From contig CAJFCJ010000010.1 of assembly GCA_904063045.1 (NCBI GenBank), forward strand, positions 434,001-498,000: 64,000 bases of DNA, read 5' to 3'. Under the pieces are notes generated by a model. That model was not told the origin of the DNA and did no database searches. It saw only the letters and a program-made list of their open reading frames with translations. Source of the DNA: Dimorphilus gyrociliatus (Eukaryota; Animalia; Annelida). The number at the start of each line of letters is the position of its first letter. Position 1 is the stretch's first letter. The position numbers and the translations under genes are program-made. This document shows, one piece after another, positions 37,947 to 45,100 of the stretch.

Positions 37947-40900
37947 CTAAGCACGTTCGCCACCCTCTTCTGCAGACTTTAATAAAGATCCATTTCTATA
38001 GAAAACCGGCGCAGGTCTCATATATGGTGATCTTCGTGGTGGTTCAGCTGGCGTTAAAGGCTCTAATTCGTGTAAAGAATGGCTTGTGCTAGCTGTTTCT
38101 TCACTTTGTACGGCGTATACGGTCTTATCTTCATGAGAACCGTCCGATTCACAACAGTTTGATGTCGGCCAATTTGCTTGTAAGAAATCGCCCTCCGGAC
38201 CAACAACGCTTAAAAGGGCCGGTAGTACAAAGATGCCCGTTAACCAGGTAGATAAAGAGACGAAAGCCAGAAGAGCACCAAGTTGAAAATACGCTCTCAG
38301 GGGTGCAAATACAAAACTAATGCCAATTGCACCAGTACTTAGGGAGGAAAATGTGACTGCAGGGCCACAATTCTTCAAAGCCGTTCGTAGCCTTGATAAT
38401 CTCCTCAAATCAGGCGACAACCTATAAGCCATACTAACTTGAAGAATTCCATCCACGCATAAACCAACAGAGAGAACGATTAGAACAGCTTGTACTGAAT
38501 CTAATTCAGGTGAGACGAGAGTCAAAAGACCTAAAGTAGCAGACGTGGCTGCGGCAATACAGAGCGTTGATAAGATAGCAAGTATAAGGTTAAGAGATCC
38601 GATTAAAGAGACGAAGCCAGCAACGCAAACTGAAACTATTACCCCAGATTGGACACCTTTAAGAAGATGGTTCTGCAAGTCAACCAGATTAAACTCAGAC
38701 GTAAAGAAGCCATTCGACATTTCGGGTGGGGCGGACTTCATTAATTTTTTAACATCATTCTCTACGGCTTCGCGAAACCGAAGTGTATCTTCATAGTTCC
38801 TCGTATAAGGTTGTGTCGAGTCAAACTGAACTATTAGACCAGATAATTTTCTTTTAAAATCATATCTGAGACCTGAAGTTTTTGTGGCCGAACCATAGAA
38901 TAGGTGGCTAGTTCTCCACGCTTCCCTACGCCAACGGTCAACACATTCCTCATATTGGGAACCCATTAATGGAAAGGTTGTTGCATTCTTGCAACACCTG
39001 AAATCTTTTACACCAAGGCAGGACTGTCGTACAAAATCTACTACTCCTTCAATATAACACCCGTTAACAACACCTGGTAATAGGCCCTGCTTAGAATCAA
39101 CGTAGTGAATTTTCCGCATACTTTTACAAAAGTTTAAAAGCCATAGCTGGGATTCATTAGCAGATGGATTAAATAAATGATCATAGATTGGTGGATAGTA
39201 AGAAGTAGTAGGGGAGAAAGAGTGTCGTCGATCCTTAGCAATGACTCCCCAAACGATCCATATTGGCATTGGGCGTCGTTTTTTTGCAGCCGCCCTTTCC
39301 CAAAGGAACTCCATTTTGTAACGGTCATAAGCTTCTAGTGGATGATCAGAATGGAAGAGAGCTAACGAAGGGGATGATGGTAGCCTTATCGTCGGGTATA
39401 CAAAAGTCGTTAAGCAGCCGAGTAGAATAAGTAAAAAGAGCAAGCTGTATGAGGCAAGAACATGGAACGTGATTCGGGAATTTAAAAAAGATAAGAATTC
39501 TTTAGAATTCACTTAAATTATTCAATCGGGCTGCGACAGATGCCTTTCTAAACGATTTTGGCAGCAGGTTGTCTTTTTAAAAAAAAATTATTTTTTTTAC
39601 TTTGTTCTAAGAGATTATATAAAAAAGAATATTTTTTATTTATTTATATATTTGCACTTAAATAATCCAAAAATGCAACATAATTATCTTTTTCATACTT
39701 TATTTAAACAGGCTGTTTTCTTACAAAAACTATTTTTAGGCCCACAGCAACAATTTGTGCTCTATTGCTTGCGGGAAGTCTGATTGAATATTCGATTTCG
39801 CAATTGTCTAGTAATAAAATATCGATTTAATTTTATCTGCTCGATCATAAATCGTTTTAGTTAAATTTATACTTAAGGATATTCTCTAGAATATATATAT
39901 ATATATATATATAGAGGACTTTTCCCTTGCTAAGCTTTTGAGCTGGCTTTGTGGAATATTATTCTTATTCTTTTTTCCCCTCTTATTTCTATCCGTTTTG
40001 ATTGCTTGAAATCTATGATTTATAATAAATTTTAACGTTTTCTCCTACAAGAATTGTTTCAGTATATTGGCCTCAATTTTCTTTTCGTAGCAGCTACTTT
40101 TTCTTCCTTTTTATGAGCGATAATATAGTTTTACGGTAAATAGAAAAGTAGAACTTTTCCTCAATGCAACGTTAAGTAGGCGTAAAAGCTTACACCATAA
40201 TATATGTATATATCCTAAGATACTACAGGCATAGTGGCTGTAAGATCTAAGCCCAATTATTCTCATTTTCTGAAACTTTTTTTGGCGCGAAATTAGCCAC
40301 ATTTTCATCTTTTGTCAGAAAGTGTAATAAGAAAATCTTTGTGGGAAAGAGTTAAAGAGAGGGTCAATGATTCCTTCTCGAATCACGTTCCATATCCAAA
40401 AATATCGCAGACGAAGAATGACGGTGGGTAGAAGGTCGTCGAAAAACGTTCTAACTAATCTTGTGGCTTTCTCGTAGAACACAAATCGAGGATATACGCC
40501 CCCGCAATATTGATCATGCAGCAACGCAGCAGCTGGCAACCACGTTACCGATAGTAATAAATGTAGGCCAACTGCTAAGCTGGAAAAAACGGCGAAACAG
40601 CGAATGCTAACGATGGCAGATAACAAATTTGATAGCAACGCTCCGGCGGTTGTCGTACTGGTCGCTAGCATACAATAAGTTGAATGCCGGAGGCTGTTAA
40701 GTACCAGACGTTCCAGCGTTCCTGTTAGTTTATCCGATTTGGCTAACTTCCAAATTTGTAGGTAGACAAATGCATCGTCAACACCTACGGCTAATAGCAA
40801 AACACCCGTCAGAATGTTGACGAAAGGGAAAAAGTTCATTGATAGGATGAAAACGTAGATAAAATAGGCTAGAATTAGGGCGAGGAAGATCTGTAGTAAC

Positions 40901-42146
40901 ACAACAATTGTGATGAACAACGAAGAACTGTAAAGCCAAATGGTACATAAGACGAACAATGCGCCCATACAGCCGTATTTTAAATCGATCTTCAAGTGCT
41001 CCGTGAACAAGGCTTCTTTTACGCCGAATCTGCATTGAGATTATTAAAGGGATATGATTCAGACTTGTTTGTTTTCTTTTCTCAAAGTTTCTTATTAATT
41101 ACACTTGCTTTTATGTTTTAATTATAACAATTATTTTGTTTATATAGTAATAAACATGTCAAGTCAAATTTTTTTAAATAATTACTTATCAATAATACTA
41201 TTAGATATAAAGATATTGTAACGGATCTGAATCACGTCCCTAGCAGCAACTAATTCAGCATGTTCATCTCTCATATTTAAAAAGTCGACAGAGTCCCAGA
41301 AGGGTAAGGCAGTTTCTGAGCTAGCACTTATTGGTAAAAAGGATGCGATATAGCTTACATCCTTACGGCGACCAAAACTTCCGTCGATTAGAAACTGAAC
41401 AACTTCATCATACCCATTACAGTTTCCGCTACTATTCGAGCATCTCTTGATAGCCGATAAGAAAATTTTAAGATTTCTATTATTTATCGAACTACAATTG
41501 TTGTCAGCAGCTAAAATTGATGTCACAGAACGAATTGGGCAGCAGGAACAGTTGGCCGATGTTTCGCAGTCTTTACGAAATATCGTGGAAGCAGTTGCAC
41601 TTTTTTCAAATCGGCAGACACTTTTAACGAAGGATAGAATAGATGAGGAACGCCTATACCAAATTAGTCTTACATATCGATGGGCCGATTCTAAAACAGA
41701 AGATGATTAATTACACAGATGTAAGCCACCTACTCTAATTTATTGTACTAGTATTGTTTCAAAGAATTTTCATTAAATTAGTCCTATTAAAAATGGTTAA
41801 GAAAGGACTATAGTCTTCATCATGAAAACGAGATGATTCCACTGTTAGAAGTATTACTTTAAAAAAAAACCTCTTAAAATGAAAGATGAGAGTGAAGTGA
41901 TGAAAAACGAGAGTAAAAAAGAATCTTGGCAAAAAAAAATTGTAATCTTTCAACAGTCACAACACTAGAAAAATAAAATAAGGATCAACATTTTTTCCCT
42001 TTTTTTCTCTCTTTTTTCTACTTTGTTAACACTTCAAGCCTACGTTATAATTACTTATCAAACAAACAAATTACGATCTATCGTATGTTAAACAATATTG
42101 ACTATTTTTACGTAGTTTAAGGTAAACTAAACGAAGAAAGAAAATG

Positions 42147-42181
<35 letters not shown>

Positions 42182-45100
42182 TAGACAGAGATAAAGAATT
42201 AGAGAGGGAGAGAAAGATGTAAGGATAAAAAAAAAGAAAAAAAAGGGAATTTTGTTGTTCCATCTTAGAAACCTCATTAGTAATTACTCTAAAAGTATTT
42301 TTTACCGTGGAATAAGGTTGAAGAAGTTTATTCTATCATTTCTTCTTGATACTATTGTGCATTTATAGGTCTCTTATACTTGTGTTTTAAACCGGATACT
42401 CTTTATTTAATATAGAATATATATTAATTTTGCTTAGTATGTCCAGCAACTATTAAATGATCAATAAATTGTGCACACTGTCTATACAGCATATACAACT
42501 GTATATTAAAGTCTGCTTTTTTTTCTCTTTTCATTGATTATTATTTTCTTATAAAAATGCTTCGTCGATGGAAAATGGAGTAGTTTTAATTAATGGTATC
42601 TTTAGTGCGAAGTAGGAGGGAGCGATAATCGATTATTAATAAAATCAACGTATTGTAAATTGTGGAAACGTATGGAATAGTTTAGAACTTGTAAGAAACG
42701 TTTGGTATTTGCTGTTGAGTCAATAAAGTTACTAAAACGAATAATTGACTGGCACCAGTTCAATAGTTAATTTTCGTTCTAAAAGGAATTAATCCTCCTA
42801 TCAAAGTTTTTTATTAAACCAATCAAGGTTCAATTATCCTTTACACGAGACAGATGTGTTTACTTCTTATTTTTTCTCCCAAGTTGATCTGGTTCGTAGT
42901 TCACTGCCACAGGTAGTCAATTTATGGGACAACATCAGCTTATATTACCTTTTACAGCTATCTTTTTGATGAAAATGGTATGAAATAGAGAGAGAAAAAT
43001 GTTTATAACGGATGCTTAGGATGGAACGTTAATGAGATTAGACGCCTTTAGTGTATGGGAAATCGCGTCTAATATATAATTAACGCGAAGCAAACTGTGA
43101 AATATATATTGCTACACCGGGTCGAGTGCAAAGGTGTCACGTAAATCTTTCTTGCTTTCCTTAAACAAAACTCTCCACTAAACCTTGGTCAAATGTCTTT
43201 TCAATGGAATTAATTTACATAATTAGTAGAATCATACACTTTTACATTTTTTTTTAACTTTTCCTTTCCTTAAGATACTTTTATAAATGCTCTAATGGTG
43301 CATAATAGAATTTAGAGTACAGTCCAGTTGCTTCTGGTTTTTGCCCACAGACGTCAGGTGTCAAGTCACACATATCGGTCAACTTTTAATAGCTTTTCAT
43401 CCATTGACAAGCCTTCATTTAAAAAAAATTTTTTTCTCGCTAGACCTTTTAAAATACTGGCAATCAAAATTTTTATCGAAAGTTGAGATTTTCCATGTTG
43501 AATGACGTTTTCTATTGATTAAGGTTTCTTACGAATAAGTTAAATTTACAAAATATAGAAAAAAAACGACAACAAAATTGGGGCAAACGTTGAAATATGT
43601 CACTACTAAGTGATAAACTAGAAAATATTGAATTTTTTCAACAATCTATATAATATAGGAATTTCATTTCTCAACGTATATAATTTTTATCTATCCAAAG
43701 AAACGCTTTTTTAAGGCAAGCGTATCAGTTGAATGTACTGTCGATTACACGACCTGAGCAATACATGCATGAAGCAACGGAGTGTCTATGGAAACCGGAC
43801 CTAAGCCTTATATTTACCATAATATATATATGTATATATATTCCTCGAATTATGATTGATTAAAAATGTAATTTGAGTTTTTAAAGGAGAACATAAAACT
43901 TTTGAAAAATTCGTGATTTGTTCAGTGCGATTACTAAACCTTTCAATAATTTTGCAACTTTATCACGAAACTATTAAAGAAATTAAAAGAGGTATCTATA
44001 AGAAGTTTTTAAATAGAAGTCATTGATCTGAAAATGTATCTACACCGCATTTATCTTGACTTTACATTTTGAAAATGATACTCCAAGTTTCCTTACCTGG
44101 ATTAAGCCCCTGGCAAACTCCTGCGCATTTAGGCCTTTCAAATTTGACACTATTATCCTCATCGTCGTATGTGATATTCGTATCGGATGGTGAAATTTTG
44201 CGACGGCGTCTATTACCATCTTTTGTCGCCTCCAGTAAGTCTAGTAATGTCGTATCGCGCCTGGCCCACTCAGTATTTCGAGTCTCGAATCCCTTAATTT
44301 GGTTGTTCGTGAGTGAAATTAAAAAGAAAGAAATAACAGAAAGTAAATAAATAAGAGCATAAAGCTGCTATTTTTTTTTTAAAAAGAGAGACATTTTTAA
44401 TCTTTATAGGCCTAGCATAGAGAAAATTTTCTACCTCGCTTGCCTCCCCTAGTCGCGGTGCTTTTCCGCTAAGTAAAACGGAGACGCAGGCGGCTAGTGT
44501 CACCGCTAAAACGATTAAAACTATCACCAAAGGACGCCTGGACAGAAAACGGCAGTATCTGCAAATAAAATAATTTTTTTATCAATTATTTATGACGATA
44601 TATATATATTTATATGTTGCTTGTTAAAAAAGTTCGAAGATTGTTGTATAATACAGAAGATAATTCTCAAATACGTCAGAGGGCGTGGTTTTATTCCCTG
44701 TAACTATCTTTATCGTCATTTACCATCCTTATAATACTTGATAAGTACGGTATAATCTTTCTATAACTTTTTATTATTAATTTCTTAATAAATTTCAATT
44801 TTAATGAACGGTAGATTATTTACACCTCTCTTTTTACCGTCATAAATAAAACCGAAATTTTATCCAGATATAATCCAGCAGGGGGTGTAGTTTACAATTG
44901 CCTATAAACTTCGTTTTACTGGAGACCCATTACATCTATACTTAACGTACTCTCATGAACAGAATATGTGTGCATATGATATCTATAATACTCGTATACA
45001 TTTACAGTATATCTAATTTTGTATAGATCGACAAAAAGATCTATTTACCGACAGTTTTTCTGACGTAAGTAGTTACATAGCCCATACATTATTAATAATA

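Follow-up and report, generated by a model that had tools for sequence, protein, structure and literature searches.

Two genuine dispatched introns with GG-AG and GA-AG borders and closing hairpins of common geometry in the annelid Dimorphilus gyrociliatus

To our knowledge, a change to a GA or GG donor counts in most animals as a splice mutation close to lethal, and we know of wide use of such donors only in a copepod and a tunicate. Goguel & Rosbash 1993 and Rogic 2008 reportedly described zipper stems that join the 5' splice site region to the branch point in long yeast introns. About 12% of introns in the copepod Eurytemora affinis have a GA or GG donor, and all of these are lineage-specific and have A at position +3; AG is obligate before the donor, and no associated sequence element was noticed (Robertson 2017, PMC5714493). 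Oikopleura dioica, too, has frequent GA-AG introns (Frey & Pucker 2020, PMC7072748), and the vertebrate genes FGFR1-3 have a GA 5' splice site, as relayed in two papers (Brackenridge 2003, cited in PMC5714493 and PMC7072748). Inverted-repeat non-canonical introns are described for Fritillaria borealis (Henriet 2019), Amoebophrya (PMC7789003) and euglenids, all as reviewed in PMC11282704. The splicing machinery of the annelid Dimorphilus gyrociliatus shows adaptation to short introns, with a median of about 66 nucleotides (nt) (PMC7854359). Its genome paper makes no mention of non-canonical splice sites or hairpins, and the literature searched held nothing relevant on introners or non-canonical splicing in annelids, in keeping with a first-pass annotation that had suggested that introns of the kind described here may be undescribed. 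The window analysed is a 64,000-nt stretch of D. gyrociliatus contig CAJFCJ010000010.1 of assembly GCA_904063045.1 (positions 434,001 to 498,000), whose minus strand carries the 3' half of a Dispatched homologue.

Here, we confirm that two introns of this dispatched gene, one GG-AG and one GA-AG, are really spliced, and describe the hairpins that close them, their counterparts in a sibling lineage and their proposed origin.

41030..41239, minus strand: intron 1, 210 nt, GG..AG, phase 2; starts GGACGTGATTC at 41239 and ends ...AATGCAG at 41030
39445..40390, minus strand: intron 2, 946 nt, GA..AG, phase 2; starts GAACGTGATTC at 40390 and ends ...CATACAG at 39445
39884-39912: (TA)n microsatellite inside intron 2, source of all other matches of this intron within the window

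The borders read ...GCTGCTAG/GGACGTGATTCAGAT...GTCTGAATCATATCCCTTTAATAATCTCAATGCAG/ATTCGG at intron 1 and ...GGATATG/GAACGTGATTCGAGAA...TTCCCGAATCACGTTCCATGTTCTTGCCTCATACAG/CTTGCT at intron 2, with the upstream exon ending in AG and TG, respectively. Position +2 is the sole departure from normal splice signals in both introns: G+1, A+3, G+5 and U+6 are normal, and the pyrimidine-rich 3' tails end in CAG. Although the joint can be placed ambiguously by 2 nt at intron 1 and by 1 nt at intron 2, no placement yields GT-AG. Intron starts, ends, phase and the restriction of the anomaly to +2 had all been read correctly in the first-pass annotation, as had the dissimilarity of the interiors. The starts of the two introns agree at 10 of 11 bases, and both introns contain the complement of this start, while their interiors match each other, or the rest of the window, only at (TA)n.

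The GG-AG joint was established with RNA from the window's own lineage (run X8) and the GA-AG joint with RNA from a sibling lineage (runs X1, X2 and X3). Contigs of X1-X3 skip exactly 39445-40390, giving the joint 39444/40391. The exons in these runs are about 8% divergent from the window, and we therefore assign the runs to the sibling lineage. X3 also skips intron 1, at the joint 41240/41029, where an apparent "211 plus one letter" is a synonymous T>A at 41242, but the sibling donor of intron 1 is canonical and its RNA is therefore silent on GG. Run X8, by contrast, has 0 differences to the window over 61 nt. The 1,092-nt contig from this run leaves the window at 41240 and resumes as the reverse complement of ATTCGGCGTAAAAGAAGCCTTGTTCACGGA, which belongs to the exon from 41029 onward, and it carries the window allele CACGGA rather than the sibling's CACAGA. 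The GG-AG joint 41240/41029 is thus used in the window's own lineage, and both junctions that the first-pass annotation had proposed for checking are found in RNA. The spliced protein aligns to six orthologues with no gap across either joint. Both introns must be removed for the conserved protein, which speaks against the earlier idea that they act as a splicing control on Hedgehog release.

Both introns are closed by a stem that pairs the donor with a segment near the 3' end. A repeat finder returned the underlying inverted repeats as 16 nt at 88% (I21) and 19 nt at 95% (I3), and our own scan delimited the stems as follows.

41225..41241, minus strand: 5' arm of the intron 1 stem, AGGGACGTGATTCAGAT, spanning the last two exon bases (-2 and -1) and intron bases +1 to +15
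41048..41064, minus strand: 3' arm of the intron 1 stem, GTCTGAATCATATCCCT
41030..41047, minus strand: intron 1 tail after the 3' arm, TTAATAATCTCAATGCAG, 18 nt with the 3' splice site at its end
40375..40397, minus strand: 5' arm of the intron 2 stem, GGATATGGAACGTGATTCGAGAA, with a perfect core at 40393-40379
39458..39480, minus strand: 3' arm of the intron 2 stem, TTCCCGAATCACGTTCCATGTTC
39445..39461, minus strand: intron 2 tail, GTTCTTGCCTCATACAG, 17 nt with the 3' splice site at its end

The 5' arms contain the 5' splice site and reach 2-3 nt into the exon, and the 3' arms stop 17-18 nt short of the intron end. The intron 1 stem spans 17 nt (14 Watson-Crick and 2 G-U pairs, -22.4 kcal/mol), and that of intron 2 spans 23 nt (20 Watson-Crick and 2 G-U pairs, -31.6 kcal/mol); in a fixed geometry, the energies are -23.6 and -27.1 kcal/mol. 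Duplex computation bore out the register claimed earlier: in both introns the partner of G+1 is a C, followed by exactly 20 nt to the intron end.

We compared these stems with about 1,100 random G..AG pairs from the window per intron length, computing duplex energies in the same geometry. Random pairs average -5.3 kcal/mol (standard deviation 3.0), and -23.6 and -27.1 are reached by the real pairs alone. The closing stem appears in both the minimum free energy and the centroid structure of each whole-intron fold (z = -3.07 and -4.85), whereas a canonical control intron of the same gene (44096-41691) reaches only -8.4 kcal/mol in the same geometry and has no such stem. The closing stems are far beyond chance. 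A loose scan of the window for introns of the same architecture returned 1419 candidates, not far from the about 1100 in shuffled sequence; under strict settings, the two real introns are the only hits in the window that join the 20-nt register, open reading frame continuity and RNA support. RNA joints and folds together thus bear out genuine GG-AG and GA-AG introns with a common hairpin geometry.

Genomic DNA of the sibling lineage was found through the exon open reading frame in a protein library (P0003, leading to L002 and L003) and aligned to the window. The protein index gave one such lineage, and the comparison comprises two introns in two lineages. At intron 2, the sibling genome reads ATG/GAACGTGATTC (L002) and likewise has GA; with the sibling RNA joint, this demonstrates GA-AG splicing with matching genome and RNA. 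At intron 1, it reads AAG/GTATGTGATTC, a canonical GTATGT donor at the same joint. Position +2 of intron 1 is therefore G in the reference lineage and T in the sibling, and the donors differ at two bases. This position is labile and weakly constrained between close relatives, with the joint unmoved.

The stems persist in the sibling. In intron 1, each arm is identical at 15 of 17 positions and the tail at 17 of 18 without an indel, against 68% for the loop. In intron 2, the 5' arm matches at 22 of 23 positions and the 3' arm at 20 of 23 (over 39462-39484), with about 47% in the interior, and the tail carries four substitutions and no indel. The sibling retains the 20-nt register in both introns. 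Relative to the window, the sibling stem of intron 1 has +2 G-C changed to U·C, +4 C·A to U-A and +13 G-C to G·A, and that of intron 2 has +12 G-C changed to U·C and +13 A·C to A-U. The covariation reported in the first-pass annotation came from setting two different introns against each other; in the orthologous comparison with the sibling we found no compensatory double changes in the stems, all changes being one-sided. Stem strength is equal at intron 2 (-27.1 kcal/mol in the window, -27.0 in the sibling), and at intron 1 the stem is weaker in the GT lineage (-15.9 versus -23.6 kcal/mol). Introns in general tend to be conserved over their first ~10 and last ~40 nt, so the persistence of the arms is no proof of selection on structure.

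In Lingula anatina (L004/P0018), Haliotis rufescens (L007/P0007) and Patiria miniata (L008/P0008), a single exon holds the last ~990 residues (~3 kb), and both joints fall well inside it. The ortholog comparison proposed earlier thus finds both introns absent from a brachiopod, a mollusc and a sea star. A gain on the worm's own branch is the simplest reading and the most likely one; loss from each of the three other lineages would be a less simple account.

The explanation that we favour, and hold at about even probability, is that these are two genuine, constitutively removed U2-type GR-AG introns (R, purine) gained in the worm's line, with a repeat that came from inserted DNA and a stem that is at most a helper. 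The inverted repeat would have arrived with the DNA whose insertion created the intron, as in an introner or a miniature inverted-repeat transposable element (MITE); the spliceosome of the lineage would tolerate a purine at +2, as in Eurytemora affinis; and the RNA stem would at most help by drawing together the ends of unusually long introns. As a source of the introns, an inserted inverted-repeat element is reasonable, though unproven, and the stem may plausibly play a part in splicing. In intron 1, the base of the 3' arm opposite +2 is C in both lineages, which would fit an original perfect repeat with G+2 that was later "repaired" to GT in the sibling.

Several observations weigh against this explanation. 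The borders have no target-site duplication longer than 2 nt, only AG at intron 1 and G at intron 2 being repeated, and the 3' arm is subterminal, an atypical position for the end of a transposon. No further copy of arms or interiors occurs within the 64-kb window, leaving an element family unsupported. The introner-like origin suggested in the first-pass annotation therefore keeps the inverted repeats and the absence from three orthologues on its side, and has the borders, the non-terminal arm and the missing copies against it. Moreover, a 5' splice site buried in a stem normally hinders U1 binding. The GG/GT comparison covers two lineages, and either state may be ancestral; the weaker intron 1 stem of the GT lineage fits relic decay and a real trade-off equally well. 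Finally, next to the G at 41238 the X8 contig spans the exon side only.

A structure-guided class of intron, in which the stem is required and presents a non-canonical 5' splice site 20 nt from the 3' splice site in place of U+2 recognition, is on the unlikely side. Consistent with it, the register is identical in both introns and is retained in the sibling despite four substitutions in one tail, the arms are 87-96% identical between lineages versus 47-68% for the interiors, and the intron 2 stem has held its strength through two adjacent one-sided changes. The GG lineage also has the stronger intron 1 stem, because its G+2 pairs with C. However, in the sibling, where intron 1 has a canonical GT and a weaker stem, the joint is unchanged, and no compensatory double substitutions were seen in the stems. 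Conservation of the arms is what the ends of any intron tend to show. In the 946-nt intron, U1 would also reach the 5' splice site well ahead of transcription of the 3' arm, and the sample is two introns in two lineages. Extending this to a genome-wide, hairpin-defined intron class, in which a stem that includes the 5' splice site, at a fixed ~20 nt from the 3' splice site, would allow GA or GG donors to be accepted by the spliceosome, seems to us rather doubtful.

We regard as distinctly improbable a history with no inserted element, in which GT-AG introns recently drifted at +2 under a relaxed spliceosome and the repeats evolved in place as "zipper" stems that shorten long introns. The GT of intron 1 in the sibling fits such drift, and 210 and 946 nt are long for a genome with a median of about 66 nt (PMC7854359); the missing target-site duplication and window copies also count in its favour. 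On the other hand, intron 2 has GA in both lineages, and evolution in place does not predict an 11-nt start (10/11) and its complement common to both introns. Nor does it sit well with the C opposite +2 of intron 1 in both lineages, as from an original perfect repeat with G+2.

A regulatory switch, in which competing pairings of donors and 3' arms control skipping of the 639-nt exon between the introns and hence Dispatched activity, has very little to recommend it. Donor 1 (41229-41240) can pair with the 3' arm of intron 2 (39464-39475) over 12 bp, 11 of them Watson-Crick, and skipping would stay in frame, the exon being a multiple of 3 and both introns phase 2. However, we saw no exon-skipping joint in X1-X3, the cross-pairing is weaker in the sibling (donor 1 = GTATGTGATTC), and the exon encodes core transmembrane helices.

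An artefact, either an assembly error at +2 or a reverse transcriptase jump across the hairpin, is largely refuted and receives almost none of our belief: stable hairpins can cause such skipping, but the removed piece reaches a normal 3' splice site that lies 17-18 nt beyond the hairpin and its excision restores the conserved, gap-free reading frame exactly, which argues against reverse-transcriptase skipping, the same joints recur in several runs and lineages, the intron 1 donor is two bases rather than one away from the sibling's, and GA stands in two independent assemblies.

Other donors and intron types were considered and rejected. The first-pass annotation had seen no plausible in-phase GT at the conserved position, and had overlooked one deeper in intron 1.

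41184..41185, minus strand: in-frame GT (AA/GTAATT), a possible but unused donor 54 nt inside intron 1; the open reading frame runs up to this GT

The GT at 41185 is unused in the X8 contig and absent in the sibling lineage, and its use would add 18 residues without counterpart in the orthologues. The GT at +5 would need a phase-0 acceptor, and none exists. A U12-type (minor) intron is excluded by the starts GGACGTGA and GAACGTGA, which are not /RTATCCTT. An FGFR-type GA donor does not apply, as neither exon end has a GT at -6, and a euglenid-type nonconventional intron is at odds with the pyrimidine-rich tails, the CAG end and the position of the +1 partner at -21.

The surrounding gene has the following organization.

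41691..44096, minus strand: neighbouring canonical intron of the same gene, used as the control; CAG/GTAAGG ... TTTTAG, RNA-confirmed
41691/41690, minus strand: acceptor TTTAG/AATCGG, where X1-X3 have a loose RNA end mapping to 44097 upward
41240..41690, minus strand: dispatched exon upstream of intron 1, 451 nt, 3' end ...GCTGCTAG; the end at 41240 is from the X8 contig
40391..41029, minus strand: middle exon, sterol-sensing transmembrane region, 639 nt, 213 codons, in frame, with RNA joints at both ends
37947..39444, minus strand: last dispatched coding exon, including the stop codon

Among solved structures in the PDB, the middle exon (a 212-residue query) best matches the DISP1 chains 7fif, 6xe6 and 7rph, with E-values of 1e-35 to 1e-38. 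These matches span the sterol-sensing region and place the protein with Dispatched, an RND transporter. The public gene model, P0001 (455 amino acids; L001:10001-11368), includes only part of the last dispatched exon, and within window 37947-44600 the upstream dispatched exons lie outside any called gene. This gap is likely due to annotation pipelines that reject GG and GA donors.

Runs under the one organism label fall into two lineages (X8 / X13; L002, L003) that are about 8% apart in exons and whose introns are largely unalignable, a pattern suggestive of cryptic species in D. gyrociliatus. X19 possibly represents a third variant, with ATTCGGTGTA where the window has ATTCGGCGTA. Sibling RNA runs X1, X2 and X13 contain contigs that read from the exon into intron 1 (window 41206-41243), and in X13 the depth of such a contig is 6.7, compared with 16.5 on the exon contig, so that retention of intron 1 in the sibling lineage may be appreciable. 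Within intron 2, two minus-strand blocks stand out, 39854-39689 with 84% and 39578-39485 with 93% identity to the sibling against about 47% around them, and the conserved region (39485-39854) has no Rfam match. Antisense to the coding exon, at 40785-40859 on the plus strand, the Rfam search of the region gave its one hit, bxd_1, at 21.6 bits where the gathering score is 75 (E = 0.063), almost certainly a match by chance.

An annelid genome presented as conservative is thus found to use GA and GG donors, and it offers a testable structural feature together with a natural GT/GG contrast between sibling lineages. If such introns occur genome-wide, the worm would be a tractable system for relaxed +2 recognition and the birth of introns, and its public gene models would be systematically broken at them. 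If they do form a hairpin-defined class, splice sites would be paired on the basis of structure in an animal, and the worm would add a third, independent lineage to the animals with many GR-AG introns.

Compared with known systems, the worm introns resemble those of Eurytemora in having G+1, A or G at +2, A+3 (shared by both) and a normal 3' splice site, in being constitutive and required for the full protein, and in their lineage-specific positions. Automatic gene models are broken in both, the truncated public model of the worm being damage of the kind described by Robertson. The worm differs in being an annelid, in having intron 2 after TG, and in its strong stem from the donor to -21. As in Fritillaria and Amoebophrya, the positions are absent from orthologues of other animals, which is consistent with recent gain, inverted repeats near the ends are able to pair, and non-canonical borders are efficiently spliced. 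The introns of those two have borders of several kinds (AG-AC and AG-AT among others), are flanked by target-site duplications and belong to multi-copy families, whereas in the worm only +2 deviates, there is no duplication, the 3' arm lies 17-18 nt inside, and the 64-kb window holds no family. Euglenid nonconventional introns likewise join their ends by base pairing near them, but they lack a polypyrimidine tract, vary in their borders, pair +4..+6 with -8..-6 and are released as circles; the worm introns carry spliceosomal signals and have their pairing partner at -21 and beyond. FGFR shares the efficient use of a GA donor, which the papers relaying it present as an alternative site whose use depends on U1 recruitment by a canonical site 6 nt upstream; the worm has no GT at that upstream position, has GT at +5/+6 instead, and splices constitutively. 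Like yeast zipper stems, the worm stems would cut the effective end-to-end distance of long introns by intramolecular pairing, but the yeast stems lie downstream of a canonical GT and exclude the splice site, whereas the worm stems include it. Each part is known elsewhere; for annelids, the literature searched reports neither a purine at +2 nor intron-closing inverted repeats, and the worm introns combine the two in a fixed geometry.

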